The notes: generated by a model not told the origin, from the sequence alone. Positions 1 through 55,700 are shown, counted from the first letter of the stretch. The stretch is DNA of 64,000 bases from Pavona decussata (GCA_977016875.1 CDRNST010000241.1:1054001-1118000); one strand, 5' to 3'. Translations and numbers: made by a program.

Positions 1-3000
1 GCCGAGCCAGGGGAAGACGTAGAGGAGTACGTTGATGAACACGGCCAGAGGGTGAGAAGAGTTGTACGGACTTCTGTGACCACAAGTACCAAGACAGTAC
101 TGAGAGATGGGGCCTTGAAGGTTGTACTGACACCTAGAGATTCTGGTCGACAAGAGCTTGGAGATGGACCCGAAGATACTGAGCGAATTCAGATCTTCAC
201 CTCGGAGCACGGTCACCGCACACAAAAACTCACTAAGCCTACACTGAAAAGTCAGCTGAAAAGACCCACAGAATCCGTGACAGTGAAAATGCCACAAGAA
301 ATGGCCCAATCTCCAGACGATGATGCACGAGCTGAAAGGATCGAGAGAACGGTGTCTTACCCAGAGTGGCTTGTATCCGTCAAAGAAAAGCCTCCCACCC
401 CAGTCTCGATTTCCTCAATTCAGATTGAGCGACATACGCCGAAGTTACCAACAGTGCGTGATACTGAGAAACCGCATGTCATAGAGGAAGTATCGGCATC
501 TATTATTGAAAGGCATCCGCCAGTGATTTCGCTACATGCTCTTGAAGACGAAGAGGAAACTCCTGCGGTACGTGAGCGTAAAAGAGCAGAGCCTCCAGCG
601 GGTTTGCCCCAGTCGCCCGAAATACCGAGAAAAAAGGTACAAAGGGAAGTAGCAGACGATAAGGTCAGTAAGACAGATGTGTTCTTACCCACTCCTCCAA
701 CAGCGCAAAAGGCCGAAGAGGAAATGGAAGTGGAAGATGAAAAGGAAGGTGACGAACCAATGGATGAAGATGAGGAAGAGGACGATGAAGAAGAGGATGA
801 CGAATTTGATGAAGAGATCGTAATAGTAGAGGTTAAAAGGCGTCCAAGTTTTCCCAGATCGTTTGTTGTTGTCCCGGATGAACCTGAAATTCCATTCGAA
901 CCTAAAAGTCTTGCTTACCCGATGAAAACCACCCGCAGTTTTTCCCAGACAAGGAAAATGCCAGAAATGCAAGAAGACTTATCTTGTGTAAATATCGACA
1001 GAAAGGTCACAATTCCTGAGCTAAGGGAATCTGACCTTTTGTCGGCAGAAGCAGATGATCAGACATCGGGGGAGGTTGAAGAATATGTTGATGAGAATGG
1101 CGTTCGAGTGAGAAGAATTGTGAAACGAACCATCACAACAAGATCTGTAATCCGTACATCTGTTGATGGCCAAAGAGACGAGCCACAACCAAAGATATTT
1201 GAGTCAGCAGCTCCTGTTTACCTAGAGATGGACGCTGAAGATGTGGTACCTTCATTGCAAACTCGAGAAATTGTCCTTCCTGGATGGATGGTCGAATGTG
1301 AACCAACACCAGAAGAACAAAAGAAGCCTCAAGAAGAAATTTCATGGTTAGTGCTACCGTCTGAACCAAAACAAGATGAGCCTAAGGAAGAACGTGACCG
1401 CGACAGCGTGAGAGAAAGCGTTACTGCAACAAATTTAAATCGGGAAATTGTTATTCCTCAAATTGATGACATGGAAGATGAGTCAGCCCAGGAAATTGAA
1501 GAATATGTTGATGAAAACGGAGTGCGAGTAAGGAGAATTGTGAAACGAACTATCACAACAAGAACTATCAAGAGAGAAGGTCAACAGATTGAACCAATGG
1601 AGCTGACATTCCCTGTAACGCAAAGACGGGATCAGTCACCAGAGGAAGTTGAAGAATTTGTTGATGTGAATGGTGTTCGAGTGAGGAGAATTGTGAAACG
1701 AACCATCACAACAACATCTGTAGTCCGTACATCTGTTGATGACAAGAGGGAAGAACCGCAAACAAAAGTATTTGAGTCCGCTGCTCCTGTTTACCTAGAG
1801 ATGGACCCTGGAGATGTTGTACCTTCATTGCAAACTCGAGAAGTTGTCCTTCCTGAATGGATGGTTGAAAGTGAACCAACGCCAAAAGAACAGAAGAAGT
1901 CTCACGAAGAAATTTCATGGTTAGTACTGGCGTCTGAACCAAGAGAAGATGAGCGTAAGGAAGAACGTGACCGCGAGGGCGTGAGAGAAAGCGTTACTGC
2001 AACAACTTTGAATCGGGAAATATTTATTCCTGAAATTGATGACATGGACGAGTCACCTGAGCAAGTTGAAGAATATGTTGATGATAATGGAGTTCGAGTC
2101 AGGAGAGTAGTGAGACGTACCATCACAACAAGAACTATCAAGAGAGAAGGTCAACAGATGGAACCAATGGAGCTGACGTTCCCTGTGGCACAAAGACAGG
2201 ATGAGTCGCCTGAGGAAGTTGAAGAATATGTTGATGAAAATGGTGTTCGAGTGAGGCGAATTGTGAAACGAACCATCACAACAAGATCTGTAGTCCGTAG
2301 ATCTGTTGATGACAAAGGAGAAGAATCACAACCAAACGTATTCGAGTCAGCTGCTCCTGTGTTCCTAGAGATGGACCCTGGAGATGTGGTACCTTCTGTG
2401 CGAACTCGAGAAGTTGTCCTTCCTGAATGGATGGTTGAAAGTGAACCAACCCCAAAAGAACAGAAGAAGTCCCACGAAGAAATTTCATGGTTAGTGCTAC
2501 CGTCTGCACCAAGAGAAGATGAGCCTAAGGAAGAACGTGACCGCGAGGGCGTGAGAGAAAGCGTTACTGCAACAACTTTGAATCGGGAAATAGTGATTCC
2601 TGAAATTGATGACATGGACGAGTCAGCTGAGCAAGTTGAAGAATATGTTGATGATAATGGAGTTCGAGTCAGGAGAATAGTGAGACGTACCATCACAACA
2701 AGAACTATCAAGAGAGAAGGTCACCAGATTGAACCATTGGAGCTGACGTTCCCTGCGGTACAAAGACAGGATGAGTCGCCTGAGGAAGTTGAAGAATATG
2801 TTGATGAAAATGGTGTTCGAGTGAGGCGAATTGTGAAACGAACCATCACAACAAGATCTGTAGTCCGTAGATCTGTTGATGACAAAGGAGAAGAGTCACA
2901 ACCAAAAGTATTTGAGTCAGCTGCTCCTGTGTTCCTAGAGATGGACCCTGAAGATGTGGTACCTTCTGTGCAAACTCGAAAAGTTGTCCTTCCTGAATGG

Positions 3001-4983
3001 ATGGTTGAAAGTGAACCAACCCCAAAAGAACAGAAGAAGTCTCACGAAGAAATTTCATGGTTAGTACTGGCGTCTGAACCAAGAGAAGATGAGCCTAAGG
3101 AAGAACGTGACCGCGAGGGCGTGAGAGAAAGCGTTACTGCAACAACTTTGAATCGGGAAATAGTTATTCCTGAAATTGATGACATGGACGAGTCACCTGA
3201 GCAAGTTGAAGAATATGTTGATGATAATGGAGTTCGAGTCAGGAGAATAGTGAGACGTACCATCACAACAAAAGCTATCAAGAGAGAAGGTCACCAGATT
3301 GAACCATTGGAGCTGACGTCCCCTGTGGTACAAAGACAGGATGAGTCGCCTGAGGAAGTTGAAGAATATGTTGATGAAAATGGTGTTCGAGTGAGGCGAA
3401 TTGTGAAACGAACCATCACAACAAGATCTGTAATCCGTAGATCTGTTGATGACAAAGGAGAAGAATCACAACCAAAAGTATTTGAGTCAGCTGCTCCTGT
3501 GTTCCTAGAGATGGACCCTGAAGATGTGGTACCTTCAGTAGAAACTCGAGAAGTTGCCCTTCCTGAATGGATGGTTGAAAGTGAACCAACCCCAAAAGAA
3601 CAGAAGAAGGCTCACGAAGAAATTTCATGGTTAGTGCTACCGTCTGCACCAAGAGAAGATGAGCCTAAGGAAGAACGTGACCGCGAGGGCGTGAGAGAAA
3701 ACGTTACTGCAACAACTTTGAATCGGGAAATAGTTATTCCTGAAATTGATGACATGGAAGACAAGTCACCTGAGCAAGTTGAAGAATATGTTGATGATAA
3801 TGGAGTTCGAGTCAGGAGAATAGTGAGACGTACCATCACAACAAGAACTATCAAGAGAGAAGGTCACCAGATTGAACCATTGGAGCTGACGTTCCCTGTG
3901 GCACAAAGACAGGATGAGTCGCCTGAGGAAGTTGAAGAATATGTTGATGAAAATGGTGTTCGAGTGAGGCGAATTGTGAAACGAACCATCACAACAAGAT
4001 CTGTAATCCGTAGATCTGTTGATGACAAAGGAGAAGAGTCACAACCAAAAGTATTTGAGTCAGCTGCTCCTGTGTTCCTAGAGATGGACCCTGAAGATGT
4101 GATACCTTCAGTAGAAACTCGAGAAGTTGCCCTTCCTGAATGGATGGTTGAAAGTGAACCAACACCAAAAGAACAGGAGAAGCCTCGCGAAGAAATTTCA
4201 TGGTTAGTGCTACCATCTGAACCAAGAGAAGATGAGCGTAAAGAAGAGCGTGACCTCGACAGCGTGAGAGAAAACGTTACTGCAATAACTTTGAATCGGG
4301 AAATAGTTATTCCTGAAATTGGTGACATGGAAGATGAGTCACCTGAGGCAATTGAAGAATATGTTGACGATAATGGAGTGCGAGTCAGGAGAATTGTGAA
4401 ACGAACTGTCATAACAAGAACTATCAAGAGGGAAGGTCAACAGATTGAACCAGTGGAGATGACATTTCCTGTAGCACAAACACAAGATGAATCACCTGGA
4501 CAAGTTGAAGAATATGTTGATGAAAACGGCGTTCGAGTCAAGAGAATGGTAAGACAAACCATCACGACAGCTACTGTGCAGCGCCGAGGCGTGTTGGAGA
4601 CTAGCGCTCTTAAGTCGGCTGTTCCCGTTGCTACGTACAGAGTTGTCGAAGAAGCGGCTCCAGGTGCAGAAATGGCAACTTTGGAGGCGATCACACCAGA
4701 AGCTGTTCTTTTGGCGCACGCTCCACCGACGTCTCCCAGACGGGCTTCGATGCCATACGAAACAACGGTTGTTCAGCGATACCTCGTCATCATTGAAACA
4801 CTGTATCAGTACGTCTTGGAGCACAAATCGATGATTTTCATTTACAGCTCAAGGCATGTGCAGTTTAATTTCGTTTTGGAGAACTTTCTTTACTGGATGC
4901 TGGTCACGCTGAAGACGTTGAGCTGGATAAGACCAGTCTCGTGGAAGGTGGATGAGATCCAGGAACAGTTGCGACAGATAAAG
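1..4983 (+). CDS. Exon 1 of window (5' truncated giant exon): acidic low-complexity region, 190-aa tandem array, start of a spectrin-like repeat
   Basis: Frame open from base 1 (AEPGEDVEEYVDEHG...). Phase-0 donor AAG|GTATTC at 4983/4984 after QEQLRQIK, the same position at which rod exons end. Confidence 0.88.
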
Positions 4984-7900
4984 GTATTCCTCCCTCGTGG
5001 AACCTGTTTACATTTGCATGAAGGGATTGGCTGTTAACGCTGTTGACACTGAGAAATTGCATGAAACCTGCATGCCTAATAGAAAGTCATCATTTCTTAA
5101 GGTGATTCGTGATGGGGATTCGATAGGCTTGTTCTTTGCTCGTCTGTTTTGAAAAGGCGATATAGACCACTCTAGGCTTGTCTTTGAAGTTTAAAACCCT
5201 GCATGTGATTAATGGTTCGTGAAGTCTTTACAACGGCACAACCAACTGGACTGGACAACAGATGAATTTTTAAATCGTAGATTGTGTTAACTTAATAAAT
5301 AAAGATTGTGATTTCGCTGTCAAGACCTAATGTTAACGAACTACATCCACGATTGACGGCCTAAATGGAATGAACTTTTATTGCATAACTAATATTTGTG
5401 TAATGAACGCTCACGGCCTACTTTTAACGTACTGTACTAACTATATATTTTCCTGGTATTTGTTGTCAGCGAAATAAACACCATTTAAATGTAGGAAGAA
5501 AAAAAAAGAATAAACCTTATTTCTCAAGGCCTTCACATTGTGTCCATTTTCACTTGTTTGCACGGTATCACAGTTACATTGTCAGTGGCATTGTACTGCA
5601 CAAGTCGAAGGTTGGCGGTTTGTGTAATTTCCGTGATCACATATGAATGCGTTGCACGTCACCAGATCACTATCCGTGTTTATTGTCATTGCGTTTCACT
5701 TCTAATACTAACAATGTTGTATTTCATTTGATTTTCAGGAGAATTTAACCAATTAGATTTGTTGTTGTTGTTGTTGTGAAATGTTCTCCATATAATTTGT
5801 CAATTAATCACTGGTTACTCGTGCGCTCATCTATTCGTCCTTTCGCCAGTTCACTCCTTAATTCGTTTCTTCGTTCATTCCTTTGTTCATTCACTCAATT
5901 GTTAACTAGTCTGAGTAACTGGCGTTATTATTCGGGCTCTTATGGCTCTTGGGTTCGTTTTCGCGGCTCCACTGCCAAACCTGTGCCAGCGCCCGAACGA
6001 TCACGCCAGCTACACTGGCTACTTATTAAGTACTCATATGCACGCTCGAGCATTTGAACTTTTATTGCATAATTTTTCTTTCGTTAATTTTCTAATATTT
6101 TCTCATTCGTTCATTAATCATTCACTCATTCGTTCGTTCGTTCATTTATTCAGTCGTTCGTTCTGTTGGTCCAACCATCGATCAGTTTCGTTGTTGTTGA
6201 TCAATATTCATTCACCATTCCGTCATCACTCGACTGTACACGTTGAGCATTAATTTGTATCAGTCGTTCTTGAATCAGTACCTGAGTTAAACAAATAAGC
6301 TTTTTTTACTGCATGCAATATTTTTATGATGACGGTGTTTCTAAACAACTAACAAAGATCTTTACCCAGAACCAAACATGTTCTTCTCAGCCAAGTTGAA
6401 CTCAGTTGGTAAAACGTTTTTCTCAAAACTAACACACTAACTCCTCCTTTTGATACGATTAACAGATTTGATGCAACGGTAAAGGAGAAAGAGCCTTTTG
6501 CCAAACTTTTGTTCCATCGCAGTTAAAATCAGTTAAAGCAGTTAAATTTTTAACAAAACATCGTATAAACACAGGACACACGAAGACACAAACGTGACGT
6601 ACGTGCATGTTTTAATAACGGGGAGGATCATTATTAGTTGACTTTGCTTACACAAAGTTCATGTAAACAACATGACTTTAGGGGACCCTGGATAAGTCGA
6701 CAGGTTGATCAAGGTTGGAAAACCTGTTGTTCTTCGTAGCAACCTTTGCACGTTTGTAGTTATTTTGCCGCCATTTCTTTCTTAATACTCCAGGATCCTC
6801 TAACAAAGGCGAAGTGGTCGGAAACTTAGAAAAAAAATTACTTTGCCCTCACAGACATCTTGATTTCCCGCAGGACATTCAAGATGAGATTAGTGATAGA
6901 GCACCTGTCATCGAAAACTTCGCCAAAGTCAGTGAGGTCCTGGTGCAGAACGCACAACCAGGCGACAAAGAGGACCTCACTAGAGAGGTTAATCACGTGA
7001 CTGAGGCATTGAACAGCATCGTCACTAGAACCGCTGACCGACGAAAGGCTTTGGAAACTGCCGAGCCGCTGGCTAGGGACTACCACAACACTTTGGAAAT
7101 GCTTGCTGAAGTGATTGCCGAGGTCGAAAACAAATTGAATACCCAGCGTGCCTTTGGAGCTGAGCCGGAAAAGATCAATGAGGAGATTGAGGAGGTTAAG
7201 GTACGGTTAACTTTCTCAAATGTTTTTTTTTTCTGTTGACTTGGATCAAGATTTTGGAACTGTATTAGCGTTATATTTCAGAGTGGTATTATCAAGCCGA
7301 GTAGGCGAATAAATAATTTTGAATGTGGCTTGGTTTTGGATTGAAAAATGATACTTTAAATTGAGAGTCTCGAAGGCATGCTTGGACCAGTTGGTAGAAT
7401 TCAAATGTAAGTTGATGACCGGAAAATTACCATCAGGAAAACGGGGAAAATGTGGCGCAAACTGTGAAGCTGAATCAGCTGAATCCAACATGAAATGATT
7501 TTTTCAGATCTTGATTGGTGTTACAAGCATTGTCTGCAAGTAAAACAGCCTCTTACTGCTCCTTACCATTGGGTTGTTCGGCGGGGGCGTTCCCGGCTGG
7601 AAGCTGTAATCACAAAATTAATTACTTTCGATTATGCAGTATTGCTGATTGAATTTTGAGAGCCGGCAAAAGAAGAGTTGTCGAAATTTTCCTTAAAAAC
7701 CCGCGATGATAGAAATATGGTGTACATTCAAACGCTGGTTGCTTTTCGATGCCGAACTCATCGAAGTAACGAGATAATTACAACGACTGAAAATGAGTGC
7801 CAAGTTTCCTTTTATGGAAGTGTCCGTATTACAGAGTCTGTGTTAAGTTTAGCCTCCTGTGGGCCAAGGGAGTTATCAGTAATGAGGGGTCGCCAACTTT

Positions 7901-49700: not shown

Positions 49701-52700
49701 TTCAACCCTCACCCCCCCCCCACTCCAGTTTAACCTAAGGTGGAAAAGGGAAACCTTCAGAAGCTAACAACCATGATTCTAACTCAGAAGTCTCATAACT
49801 TGACGAAACGTGAAATTGATCAGTTTATCAGCAATCAATTTGCGTAATGAGGAGTTCCCTGCTCTGTTCACCACAAACTCTTTTTCTCAAGTGGTGAGCA
49901 GGAATATTTAAAAAAAATTGCATTTTCTGCTCGCTTTTCTATCGATCATGTCAAAGTTTTTTTTTTTTAAAAAAATACAATTTGATGACAATGTTCAGCA
50001 CTTGGCAATGCGTTTTGCATTCAATAGTTCTGTCAATTGCCTCGTGACAAACTTTTAAACTCTGAGTTTGCACGGCTCTGGGGCTATGATTGAGACTGTC
50101 ACGGAATAATACTTAATGTATTGTTGTTTCTAAATTGATTTAAAAAAGAGCCGTAAAAGTGTGTGGTTGATAACAAATGTTTACTTAATGATCACATTGT
50201 GAAAATGCCTTTAGACTTGAACGATATCACATGAAAAACATTGTGCTCAAATTATAAACAGATCGTAATCGAGCCATCGGCAAACTTTTTGCACCTTTTC
50301 ACGAGTATTTCAGTTTTAAGTGTACTGAAATAAACGATTTAGGAACTACACTTACATCTTGACTGGCTCTCTCTTTACTAGGCTTTGCAGAATGAGATTG
50401 CCAAGCAAAGAGCAGCTCTGGACCGGACAAATGACCTCGGCAAAGTCATTATCGAGAACAGCAACGAAAATCCTCTTGTAGTGGCTGATGTCCAAGGGAA
50501 ACTCACTAAGGTACGCGTTCAGTTGGATCACCTGGACGCCAGAATCGAACAACGTCACGCTATTTTACAGAACATCCTTTTGCAGATTCAGGTGTATGAT
50601 GTGATGTTTGATGACTTTGTCACCAAGCTGGCTGAAATGGAGGATGAAGTTGCTAACTTCAGACCAATTTCTGCCGTCCTTGAAATTGTAAGTGAACAAA
50701 AGGAACACATCCAGCACAGCGTCAGTGAGAACATTGCCCGGAAACAACCCGTGTTCGAAAAGATCTTGGAAGACGGGCTCAGCATGGTGGAAAGAATGGA
50801 ACCTGGTAGCGAGAAAGACGAACAACTGGAGAAACTGGAGCAGATGAAGTCACGGTGGAATGATGTCAAGGAGAAAACAGCTGAACTGCAGAGCCGAGTG
50901 GAAGAGGTGCACGAGGCGTCACAAAAGTACGATCAGCGAGCGGCAGCCTTCAAGGATTGGCTACAGGATGCAGAGAAGAAAGCAAGCAAGATCTATCCAG
51001 TATCGTGCGATGAGAATGAGTTGAATGAAAGTCTCAAGGAACTGGAAGCAATCACCTCTGAGATCGAGTCTCACAAAAACGACTTTGATGAACTGAACGA
51101 GTCAGGTAGCACTCTTACCAACTTATGCCAAGCTGATGGTGATGTCATCAAAGCAGATTTTAACGAGATTAAGAGTCGATGGGACGCCCTGCAAGCTGCT
51201 GTTCTTGACAAAAAAGCCAAGGTACAGGAAGCCAAGGAAGCTATCGAGAAGTACCAGAGTGCATTGCGGCCTGTACAAGAAGCTTTCACTCAGGCAGAGT
51301 ATGCTCTCGCATCCAACGAACCCGCGGGAACCGATGCTGATAAACTGCGAGTAGAGTTAGAACAGATAAAGGCCTTGGTGTCAACTCTAGATGAGAGGAA
51401 AGGAGACATCAAGCAGTTGAATCAGTCTGGACAGCAGCTTCTTCAACAAGCTGAAGATGACGCTCCTTCCTCGCTGAGCGTTAAGGAACAACTAAACAAC
51501 ACGAACAATAAGTCTAAAGACCTGCCTATCAGGCTTAGCGACAGACAGAAGGAACTTGAGAAAGCACTAGAGAATACAGTCAAGTTCAATTCCCTGCTTG
51601 AGGAAATTGAACAGTGGGTTCCAGAAACTGTCGAAGCTGTTGATGCTCTAGAACCAGTGAGCTCAGAACCAGAGAAACTCCAAGAGCAGATCCGTGAGAC
51701 AGATAAACTGCAGGAGGAGGTGAAAAGGTACCTAGTGCGCGTGTGTGCAGTGGAGGAGACAGGCCAACGCTTGATAGAAGACAGCATGCAAAATCCAGAT
51801 GCTGTGTCAGACATTCAGAACAAGATCGAAAAAACTCGCCAGCCAGTCAATCAGCTTAATGCCAAGCTGGAACAAAGGAGTCTAAGACTACATAACGCCG
51901 TGTTACAATCACAAGAATTCCATGACGCTCACGAAGATTTCGCGGCTCGTTTAGGAAGCCTCTATGAAACGCTGCAAAGTCAAGAGCCTGTGTCTCCAGA
52001 CTTCCCCATAACAAGACGCCAGAAGGACGAGTCAGACGACTTGAGTGACTCCATTGCTCAGATGCAACCTGCGTTCGATAAATTGCTGGCGGCGGGGGAA
52101 AAGGTTCTAGAAGCCACGGATCCTGGAGAAGACAGAGAAAACTTGCTGCAGAAGTTGGACGACTTGAAAGAAACGTGGGACGCTTTGAAGAATGGAGCAA
52201 CCGATCGAGAGAATAGTGTAGCGTTAGTAATCCCCGATGCCAAGTCGTTCCACAGCGGAATGCAAGGATTTGACTCGTGGCTTACAGACACTGAGAGGAA
52301 ACTTGCGTCGGTAAACACCGAATCGGTAAACCCCGAAGAGCTAAGCCAGCAGGAAAAGGTATTAGAGGATCTTAAAGAAGCTATAGAGGGTCACAGGCCG
52401 GATCACCAGTCTCTGAACAGCACTGCTGAGTCTCTGAAGGACAAGTGCAAGGATAACAGTTACTTCGTGGAAGTTCAAATTAAAGATGTAAATCGGCGAT
52501 GGGAGGAATTGCTAAAAGACATCGAAGCAAAAGAAGCTGAGTTACAAACTGCAAAGGACAATTTGGATGGGTATCTTGATGCTCTCGGCATTGTGGAAGA
52601 GGAAGTACAGAAGGCTGAATCAACGCTAGAATGTCAAGAACCAACTGATCTCGACGTCTCGAAGCGCAAGAAAGAACTTGCAAGAGTTCAGCAAGTTGTT

Positions 52701-55700
52701 GATGACCTGGAGAAGTGCGAACCTCGCCACAAAGAAGTTCAAGATCTTGGTGGTAAGCTACTCGAGGGAATGAATCCGGATTCCACGGAAGCGGTAATGT
52801 TGAAGCAGCAGCTAACGAAAGTGGAACAGTCGTTTACTACCACCTTGGTCAGAGCAAGGAACCGCAAAACACGACTGGAGAAAATTATTGTCTTAATCAT
52901 AGAGTTCACGGAGAAATACGAGGTCCTGATAACTTGGACTGAGGAGATAACCATCGTAATTGAGACCATCCATATTGTGAGGGCAAATCCCACTGCTATA
53001 AAGAGCCAACTGGAAGAAATCGAACACATACAGGAAGACATTGTGAAGCAAAGATCCACTCTCGAGTCCGTGGACGATACTGGGCAGCGGCTGGTTGAAT
53101 GTTGCGATAATGAGCCCGCGGTTGTGATGGAGGTCAGCAGTAGAGTGTCCAACGGAAAAGCCTCGCTGGAGTTACTGTCAGCTAAAGTCGATGACCAGCA
53201 TAACAAACTTTCGGCTGCAGTTTTGCAATCACAGGAATTTCAAGAAACGTTGGATGATTTTGCTGCCAAGTTAGGACAGTTGGAAGGTGATGTAGCCAAG
53301 ATGGGACCCGTGTCTTCCCTGTATGATGTGTTACGCGAACAACACGTGGAAGTTGAACACGCCTCTGCGGATGTCAAGCAACTGGAACCTTTGTTCGAAA
53401 GGATCGCCAAGAATGGCCAAGATATTTTGGAGAGTCTTGACCCTGGAGAGGAGAAGGACGAACTGGAGGAGAAATTAAATGACCTCACTGCTCGGTGGGA
53501 TGCCGTGAAGACGAAGATTGACGATCGTAAATCAAAGATCGAGCAAGTCTCACCTGTAGCAAAGACTCATCATGAATCACTACAGTCTCTTCTCCCCTGG
53601 ATGAGCGACACGGAAGACTGGGTTTCTTCACTCGAGCCTGTCTCTTGTGACGAAAAGGGCATTTCAAAGGAGCAAAAGACACTGGCCACTTTATTAGAAC
53701 AACTTGCCGAACACAAGCCAGAGGTAAGTACATTGAAAACTTGTTAACACACTATCAGCTAGTTAACCCTTTCATTCAGTTATAATGGTATCAAGGTGCA
53801 GATCTGAATTTGTTTTACTCAAGAAACCATGTCAAACGATCAGTAACAGAAGAGTGCTACCGTTAAACAAAAAGCCAAAGGCTTGACTCTGGAATGAACC
53901 ATGACGCATGTTTCAGTATTGATCAAAAAATATTGTTCAGCAAATGTTCGGAGTTGTATCCATTTCGTTCAGGAGCGTTCAACATTTTGTGTAACTTATT
54001 TTGGCATTCAGGACAATATGATAGAAAGTAACAGTGGTCAAAATGTTTTAAAGAACAGTCGCTAGATTTGTTGGGCAACATGCGCTGAACAAGTTGAACG
54101 GTGTGTAGCTTACAGAGGCTTGACAGGAATTTTGAGAAAGATAAAAGGTCAAAACAACCTCAAAAGTTTGTGTCTGTGGCCCGTTTCGAGCTTTCGAATT
54201 CGATGAAAGTTGAATTTCTGTTGAGGAAGATTCTGTGTATGAAATGTTTTCACACCCGGAATGTTACCGGGCCTTACGAGAAACGAGCTCCTACTCCTTA
54301 AACTGGCTTTTAATAACACGCCCAAGGGCCTCAAGCTACAGTTTACTGGGGAGGTATTGTTTTGTTGCTTCATCTTTAAGTGAGAGTTTCTATAACTGTT
54401 TTAAATATGGCAGGTTGACGCGATAAATGACGCAGCTCGTGACCTGCCTGAACTCTGTGATGATGTGCAAGTGGTGCACGCAGAATCAAAGGATGCGAAC
54501 AAGCGATGGGAGGTTCTGACCGCTAATCTGACAGTACGACAGCAGCACCTGGACAGTGTGGCGCGGCTGATGGAACAACTGACACAGCAGCTGCAGCCGA
54601 TCGAGGAAAGGCAGGAAGAAGCACAGGCCATGGCGGATGCACCACTGACTAATCTCACGGATACCGAGAAAGGAGAAGAAGAACTCAGGAAAATAGAGGT
54701 AATAAACTTATCTGACACTTCTTTAGAGAATATCTCAACTATGGAAACTGATTGACATGTTCTCCTGTTTCTAGGCCTTGCTCTCAGTTCTAAAAGGCCA
54801 GGAGCCTGAGCTAAGCGAAGTCAATGACAACCTGTCAATCCTGATGCAGCAAGTCGACGAAAAGACTCCTCCCGCCACCCAGGTCAGGGCTGACGTGTCA
54901 CAGGCAGACCAGAAAAACAAAGACCTCATCGACAAACTTAGCGTGCGCAAAGCCAACCTCGAGGAAGACGTAAAGGACGCGCGCGTGTTCCAGGAATCAC
55001 TGGCGGAAATAGAGGCGTGGTTACCAGAGGCAACTGAACGTGTATCAGCTCAACAGCCAATCAGCACCGACCCTGAGACGGTCAAAAAACAACTGGAGGA
55101 AGCAGAGGTTTGTTTAATATCACTGCTGTTCATAACCTCGTTGGCAATTTTTCTTGTGGGCTCGCCTCGCGTTCTTCCCGCAGTTTGCTAAGATTTTCAC
55201 ACCGTAAAAGCTTAGAACAAAGCTGGAAAAAACTTCTTACTCTTTAGTTTGCATTATAATGAGAAGCAAGTAACATCATAGGAAAGTATTGTTCAGCAGT
55301 TTTCATTTGAACAGTCACACTTTAGGATTTTATCTACAGACATAAGAGTTAGAACCACCTTGTACAACATAATAAACAGCACCACAGGAAAGTACTGCTC
55401 AGTAGCTTTCATTTGAATGGTCACACTTGAGGATTTCATCCATGGGAAAGTAGTGCTTGGTAGCTTTAATATGAATGGTCGCATTTCAGGATTTCATCCT
55501 AGGAAAGTACTGCTCAGTAGCTTTCATTAGAATGGCCACACTGTGGAGTTTCATCTATTGACTTAAAAATGGTAATGTTAATAATGTTATGTTAATAATG
55601 TTAATAATGTAATGTTGACATAATGTTAATGGTGGCACTTTAGGATTTTATCCACTACCTCAAAACGGCTAGAACCGATTTCATGATGTCAAAGTTTGAC

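Follow-up and report, generated by a model that had tools for sequence, protein, structure and literature searches.

Spectraplakins are taught as a fixed set of modules consisting of CH, the plakin domain, plakin repeats, a spectrin rod and EF-GAS2. Bilaterian spectraplakins such as the long isoforms of Drosophila Shot (PMC2173965), MACF1b and BPAG1b carry the plakin repeats on a very large exon that lies between the plakin domain and the rod, is included alternatively and provides the actin-microtubule linker with a third binding region. According to the literature, the plakin-repeat module originated in Bilateria, and a true spectraplakin has been reported in the coral Stylophora (PMC9145010). 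We analyzed a stretch of 64,000 nucleotides (nt) of the coral Pavona decussata (assembly GCA_977016875.1, contig CDRNST010000241.1, positions 1054001-1118000; G000:C241:1054001-1118000 in our numbering), hereafter called the window, along with upstream and downstream DNA taken from the same contig. At its left end lies a giant exon which resembles the plakin-repeat exon in its size, its alternative inclusion and its apparent position between plakin domain and rod, and which may likewise form a third binding region. It lacks plectin/plakin repeats and instead encodes an acidic, predicted disordered array of short motifs. The repeat module described here has no family annotation.

The coral exon also has similarities to other described systems. 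In titin, itself a giant cytoskeletal protein, the PEVK/poly-E region forms a very long insert that is subject to alternative splicing, is charged and disordered, and consists of repeats in variable number; P, E, V and K account for about 70% of titin PEVK. The obscurin-binding motifs (OBD1 and OBD2) are located in the C-terminal regulatory domain of vertebrate ankyrins, including small ankyrin 1.5, i.e., of proteins characterized by ANK repeats, ZU5-UPA and a death domain, and show a similar acidic stretch bearing an aromatic residue, a D-E-x-G sequence and alternating basic and beta-branched residues. They are closely spaced docking peptides for cytoskeletal giants: muscle ankyrins contain two of them within 76 amino acids (aa), and this segment is reported to bind plectin, filamin C and obscurin (PMC3575540).

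Giant cassette exon of a spectraplakin-type gene

A translation scan revealed that frame 1 of the window is open from 1 to 5037 and continues past the left window edge. In the upstream sequence an acceptor (TTTAG/G) was read at window position -593, and a donor (AAAG/GTATTC) lies directly after 4983. The exon, its parts and its downstream neighbors are given below in window coordinates.

-593 to 4983 (G000:C241:1053407-1058983), + strand: giant cassette exon of 5,577 nt or 1,859 codons, both ends in phase 0
1 to 4983, + strand: portion of the giant exon in the window; open frame off the left edge, donor after 4983
22 to 102, + strand: motif copy 2 of 15, EEYVDEHGQRVRRVVRTSVTT, from the pattern scan
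307 to 891, + strand: non-repeated 5' region with YPEWLVSVKEKPP, PPVISL, an acidic run (766-815) and DEFDEEIVIVEVKRRPSFP; homologous to a standalone coral protein of ~500 aa
1060 to 1479, + strand: half unit, one B-type motif (at 1078) and a 139-aa spacer
1480 to 2049, + strand: tandem unit 1, 190 aa, A-type motif at 1498 and B-type motif at 1651; spacer with FESAAPVYLE, LPEWMVE, ISWLVL and NREIVIPEI
2050 to 2619, + strand: tandem unit 2, motifs at 2068 and 2221
2620 to 3189, + strand: tandem unit 3, motifs at 2638 and 2791
3190 to 3762, + strand: tandem unit 4, motifs at 3208 and 3361
3763 to 4335, + strand: tandem unit 5, motifs at 3781 and 3934
4336 to 4599, + strand: terminal partial unit, motifs at 4354 and 4507, without the long spacer
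4600 to 4983, + strand: exon tail, a linker followed by the helices that open the next spectrin-type repeat (RYLVIIETLYQYVLEH...RPVSWKVDEIQEQLRQIK)
4984 to 6873, + strand: GT..AG intron, joint 4983 to 6874, with a high-copy repeat inside at ~5948-6315
6874 to 7201, + strand: next constitutive exon, encoding a spectrin repeat (Pfam Spectrin match, E 6.8e-7)

A first-pass annotation, made from the sequence of the window, had assigned the array (22-4580) to one giant exon and had proposed that this exon is spliced to 6874. The single exon was confirmed; its open frame runs on beyond 4580, and the true 3' end is at 4983. The splice proved correct as well. In three RNA-like public runs from three studies, contigs covering the giant exon ended at 4981-4984 and restarted at 6872-7201, with 5580-6867 uncovered. 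The DNA-like run X15 gave contigs over every bin, the intron included. One contig of run X1 contained the GT..AG joint of 4983 to 6874, with the acceptor exactly as predicted. In a 6.8-kb contig of run X5, the 27 letters before 6872 were those of L004:7036-7062, with which the preceding exon closes immediately before its GT donor. This exon ends at window position -2936, and the contig joins -2936 to 6874, skipping the giant exon. Exons were searched singly, and the continuity of the frame across the junctions was verified locally. Since all three boundaries are in phase 0 and the exon comprises 1,859 complete codons, inclusion and skipping both preserve the reading frame. Thus, the giant exon is an alternatively spliced cassette exon. 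The joints devoid of the intron point to a cDNA origin of the runs.

Within the intron, positions 5948-6315 displayed an approximately 1,000-fold summed contig depth in run X15, compared to ~15-30 elsewhere. This high-copy repeat includes an 8-nt tandem repeat at 6103-6163.

The affiliation to a spectraplakin-type gene, which had been suggested from the window, was corroborated by the spectrin repeats encoded downstream and by a GAS2 domain on the same strand. PF00435 matched + strand exons from 6814 to 62227 with E values of 1e-71, 3e-29, 9e-18 and others, and PF02187 (77 bits) was found at C241:1141154-1141273 (+), 23 kb downstream of the window. One exon of the rod (50385-53747), which is unbroken over 1,120 codons and contains seven or more spectrin repeats, represents a second giant exon of the gene. 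On the contig, no CH match at E<=1e-5 and no match to SH3_10 or Spectrin_2 was obtained, the sensitivity being limited by split exons. The upstream exons could not be typed as a plakin domain, their PDB matches being solely spectrin repeats of dystrophin and utrophin, and a composition filter across 90 kb upstream was uninformative. Plectin/plakin repeats (PF00681) were detected neither in the giant exon by Pfam nor genome-wide, the latter being a weak negative that agrees with the dating of the plakin-repeat module cited above.

Motif array and its relatives

All 14 motif copies listed in the first-pass annotation (codons starting at 22, 1078, 1498, 1651, 2068, 2221, 2638, 2791, 3208, 3361, 3781, 3934, 4354 and 4507) were recovered as exact matches by a regular-expression scan of frame 1 with the pattern EE[YF]VDx[NH]GxRV[RK]RxV[KR]. 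A 15th, more divergent copy (EEYVDDEGRRVKRISK) is located at window position -119, outside the window and on the same exon, and is the first of the array. The motif encompasses ~27 residues with an acidic strand EEYVDE, an NG turn and a second strand, VRVRRIVKRTITT, that is basic and beta-branched. The five complete tandem units of 570 or 573 nt (1480-4335) are mutually 88-97% identical in DNA; the motif copies are not independent chance events. In each complete unit, 51 aa separate the A-type from the B-type motif, and the accompanying 139-aa spacer is acidic and contains proline, as had been noticed before. Four further short motifs are conserved in the spacers (FESAAPVYLE, LPEWM, ISWLVLP and NREIVIPEI). 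The array was missed by Tandem Repeats Finder because the longest period of the program is 500; the acidic run in the 5' region of the exon was picked up as an acidic tandem repeat. Among the units of the array, the ratio of nonsynonymous to synonymous differences (pN/pS) was 0.41 for motif codons and 0.59 for spacers.

In run X1, one contig joins a sequence like the pre-array segment (~1050) at window position 3927 to the motif at 3934, probably because the repeats misled the assembly or because individuals differ in copy number.

A word-based search with the exon, whose query overran the true donor by 21 nt, yielded 27 proteins of uniform architecture. At 46% identity, the best named relative was a partial protein from Montipora foliosa, a stony coral, and proteins from other assemblies reached 86-88%. 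According to a local count with a hidden Markov model, the orthologous proteins contain 4-32 motif copies with periods of either 51 aa or 51+139 aa, the regular arrays of 51-aa period extending up to 32 copies. Motif columns were conserved at 0.80 across the 27 proteins versus 0.68 for the remaining columns. Orthologous exons whose overall identity is no more than 26-50% still retain the motif, which represents more than a recent duplication. Distant members also preserved FES..PVYL and LPEW(M/L), and the exon tail closes P0025, P0027, P0070 and P0074 in the same way (...RPV(S/T)W...IK). On two metagenome contigs of a more distant relative (L026:8092-15662 and L027:7367-14982), a spectrin-like exon is followed by a series of consecutive open frames over which the motifs are spread; a distinct sub-array of ~97 aa (PVEEFTDDQGRVVRVVIIRTIVTRTVIKNG...) was also seen there. 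Matches of several orthologues to PF27288, a cyanobacterial family (Alr2735), were faint and judged spurious.

The position of the array relative to the plakin domain could be determined by orthology. In Nematostella, A7SF37 (P0065) comprises 27 copies followed by a spectrin repeat, and the neighboring model P0120, whose scaffold has the same length, contains CH (E 1e-45), SH3_10, the plakin SH3 (E 4e-26), spectrin repeats and then nine copies at its end. In the anemone protein P0085, spectrin repeats are directly followed by the array, and residues 138-680 are colinear with exons 3-16 kb upstream of the giant exon. The layout of these proteins and the colinearity place the array after CH/SH3_10, on the side of the plakin domain, and before the rod. 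Judged by these orthologous sequences, the array occupies the slot of the plakin-repeat exon in Shot and MACF1b.

The near identity of the units (88-97%), pN/pS values only moderately below 1 and the fact that the exon can be skipped in frame would also fit a neutral, recently expanded coding minisatellite without specific function in a tolerated disordered insert. We regard this reading as very improbable, because stony corals, sea anemones and more distant relatives have all retained the motif along with the position and the tail of the exon, and no interruption occurs in the 1,859 codons of the open frame.

Outside of these orthologues the motif is rare. A profile built from 59 diverse copies (A2) gave 47 matches at E<=0.001 among 1.84 billion representative proteins; nine of these matches were scanned with Pfam. 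The matches that could be placed belong either to cnidarian orthologues of the spectraplakin exon or to a single further family of coral proteins. P0096 (L029:3879-5891; match E 1.2e-4), a repeat protein containing DGRRVVTKTITTTTYE, was placed in neither; its units of ~190 aa include a modified form of the basic strand (E..VD.EGRRIVTKTVTTTTYE...DGNIV), and it is surrounded by very large open frames (>3,300 aa) without Pfam match. P0076 and P0093 (repeats with FFDEHGRRP) as well as P0092 and P0094 (YVDENGN and FVDENGKE repeats, resembling bacterial MucBP-type strands) had low scores and were judged unrelated. The giant exon gave only sub-threshold noise with Pfam (Prefoldin_2, SpoIIID), the motif profile had no match to PDB sequences even at E 10, the ESM Atlas feature search returned no usable match, and a text search of the literature for motif strings found nothing.

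In the genome of the coral itself, the motif profile matched only the giant exon and paralogues on contig C318.

C318:2882558-2883979 (L019:4558-5976), + strand: gene for an acidic protein with a CCCPCC start, one hairpin motif, PEWMEERKSP, a poly-D/E run and EFEEEFVVMEV
C318:2871778-2873001, - strand: head-to-head neighboring paralogue, motif profile match
C318:2897532-2897780, + strand: truncated duplicate of the C318 gene, motif profile match

The head-to-head pair encodes acidic proteins of ~400-500 aa. The C318 gene family comprises ~500-aa proteins starting with a CCCPCC cluster, which is possibly palmitoylated. Many members were found on short contigs, as would be expected of transcripts. 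The C-terminal half of these proteins is homologous to residues 301-495 of the exon, as shown by comparing an alignment of exon orthologues (A4) with one of the paralogue family (A5) by hhalign (probability 99.6%, E 1.6e-23, 156 columns). The homology is visible in the profile-profile comparison only; pairwise BLASTP of the 5' half of the exon against the paralogue was not significant (E 4.1). Since the motif lies upstream of the homologous segment in both, the modules of the exon and of the CCCPCC proteins are colinear. The ~500-aa coral proteins automatically named 'starmaker-like' in Montipora foliosa are true homologues of the 5' half of the exon and share its module order, i.e., hairpin motif, PEWM, P(V/D)ISL, acidic run and DEFEEEIVVxEVxRxPRFP. 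They differ from the exon in that they are standalone proteins with a possibly lipid-anchoring Cys cluster, one or two motifs, no 190-aa tandem units and no spectrin repeats.

Comparison with the obscurin-binding motifs of ankyrins

The first-pass annotation had likened the motif to the obscurin-binding segments of ankyrins. A kinship with the OBD was not shown: none of the 47 library matches was ankyrin-like by sequence, length or context (nine scanned with Pfam, as above). This absence says little, because single copies scoring 10-16 bits cannot reach the threshold. The two ankyrin peptides given in that annotation, which are unverified, were compared post hoc with the motif profile and scored 16.2 bits (ankyrin-B) and 9.3 bits (ankyrin-1), whereas the best unrelated match in a local null of 261,000 residues, translated in six frames from the coral genome, was 6.9 bits. 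Both peptide scores are far from significant at the scale of the whole library. From HMMER statistics we estimated ~0.1 chance matches per proteome at the ankyrin-B score, a value that is suggestive and below significance.

Other findings concern the context of the motif. The coral genome revealed no motif near ZU5 loci and none in an ankyrin tail, its matches being confined to the giant exon and the paralogues. ZU5 is strongly expanded in this genome (39 matches on C77 and other contigs, seven of them in tandem on C77; C77:639244-816312, - strand), and a true ankyrin gene was therefore not readily singled out. The host gene is not an ankyrin. It combines spectrin repeats and GAS2, and an orthologue has CH and SH3_10. 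The copy number is likewise unlike that of the OBD: ankyrins have one or two copies, whereas the 1,859 aa of the coral exon contain 15 and related proteins as many as 32.

If the motif were a true OBD homologue, the spectraplakin might dock through it to an obscurin/UNC-89-like protein or some other partner of the OBD. In favor of such homology, the unverified peptides align to the profile core (eEYvDEnG..V...V.r) above the null, and the spacing of the ankyrin pair within 76 aa is of the same order as the 47-51 aa found here. Against it stand the lack of a recognizable ankyrin in the library (at scores below its reach), of a PDB match and of any match in the coral genome outside the exon and its paralogues. 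Moreover, the pattern is short and of simple composition, so that convergence is plausible. Altogether, we consider true homology distinctly improbable. An obscurin/UNC-89-like protein, which had been put forward as the partner, is unlikely in the coral because invertebrate obscurins, among them UNC-89 and fly obscurin, reportedly lack the ankyrin-binding region (PMC12812942). The region of plectin that binds the ankyrin segment was not found in a literature search.

In a broader and rather speculative version, the EEYVDxxG-basic-strand hairpin would be an ancient cytoskeletal docking peptide, kept by vertebrate ankyrins for binding obscurin, plectin and filamin, and used in multivalent form in the cnidarian cassette exon and in a lipid-anchored small protein. 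In terms of function, the exon would then precede the plakin-repeat exon or correspond to it, and the existence of a conserved domain serving as receptor of the peptide would be implied. We deem this combination improbable.

Structure and possible function of the array

The exon product is a polypeptide of 214 kDa with an isoelectric point (pI) of 4.7, a net charge of -145 and a D+E content of 22.6%; P, E, V and K together amount to 40.7%. The charge is split within the motif, the first strand being acidic and the second carrying a net charge of +4 to +5. AlphaFold2 gave a mean predicted local distance difference test (pLDDT) value of 38 with the single sequence and of 53 with a 55-row alignment, the latter with a predicted template modeling (pTM) score of 0.19, and showed no globular fold. 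The product is predicted to be largely disordered. A strand-turn-strand was drawn at every motif copy, and the motifs were among the regions of highest local confidence (pLDDT ~55-71). The beta-hairpin that had been proposed for the motif is therefore drawn by the models throughout, albeit at low confidence only, and is weakly supported by them.

Tentatively, and at somewhat less than even confidence, we favor the reading that the array of the included isoform is a multivalent docking platform in a disordered acidic linker. Exon inclusion would add ~1,860 very acidic residues between the plakin-domain side and the spectrin rod. Each motif would fold into, or be captured as, a beta-hairpin by a putative partner, for example via strand addition to a beta-sandwich domain or via charge-patterned contacts. 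One spectraplakin might in this way bind many copies of a partner or one polymeric surface with high avidity. Since the exon appears to lie in the slot of the bilaterian plakin-repeat exon, which binds intermediate filaments, it probably gives cnidarians a different, lineage-specific third linkage. The small Cys-cluster coral protein may deliver the same binding activity at another site. A docking array is supported by the conservation of the motif at variable copy number and unit length in orthologues down to ~26-40% identity, by the conservation of the spacer blocks, by the rarity of the motif elsewhere, by pN/pS values below 1, by the strand-turn-strand drawn at each copy and by the homology of the 5' half of the exon to the standalone protein.

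The composition of the insert is also compatible with an entropic spring or spacer like titin PEVK/poly-E. The long isoform would thereby be tuned in length and elasticity, and the charged motifs would not be docking sites but would make weak and reversible intramolecular contacts. The extreme charge and acidity described above, the lack of a predicted globular fold and a copy number that varies freely among species (4-32), as for a length-tuned element, agree with a spring. However, a pure spring would not need a motif and four spacer blocks whose sequences are conserved to distant anthozoans, and the same modules occur in a small protein that is not a spring. In addition, a P+E+V+K content of 41% is far below that of titin PEVK, no PPAK-type repeat was matched by Pfam, and the coral array differs from PEVK by its conserved motifs and predicted strands. 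A spring is therefore a possible but unlikely function.

The charge-split hairpin might alternatively mediate self-association, with acidic and basic strands zipping into beta-sheets or driving condensates and thereby bundling spectraplakins. Such an activity would be in line with the regular 51-aa arrays of relatives and with AlphaFold2 strands that extend past the motif. The low pTM score and the lack of confident packing between hairpins in the model argue against it, as does the standalone paralogue, which has only one or two copies. We hold self-association to be somewhat more doubtful than a spring.

Several points weigh against a multivalent docking platform as well. The use of the acceptor at -593 is predicted from the sequence and was not directly observed in contigs. 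Each splice junction is represented by a single contig whose short side measures 27-29 nt, and the RNA nature of the splicing runs was only guessed. The prediction of the hairpin is of low confidence at the local pLDDT values given above. Finally, the tandem units are young, and part of the copy number may be due to neutral expansion.

Anthozoans appear to fill the plakin-repeat slot with a different, unannotated module, which is conserved in stony corals and sea anemones and is common to a spectraplakin exon and a small, possibly membrane-anchored protein. As Nematostella carries the array, it offers a tractable model for what the third arm of a pre-bilaterian cytolinker binds, a question that concerns animals without the classic cytoplasmic intermediate-filament linkage. 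The locus supplies a defined peptide of ~27 aa and a 190-aa unit, both suited to binding screens.

A minor observation was made in the vicinity of the paralogues on C318. Two long tracts (C318:2888302-2890484 and 2901606-2902446) are open in several frames and consist of Pro/Ser/Phe-rich repeats (PSSHPLFSPQVPTPF...). They are ~13 kb apart, and each is located near a copy of the paralogue motif exon; this arrangement points to a duplicated segment that includes a satellite.

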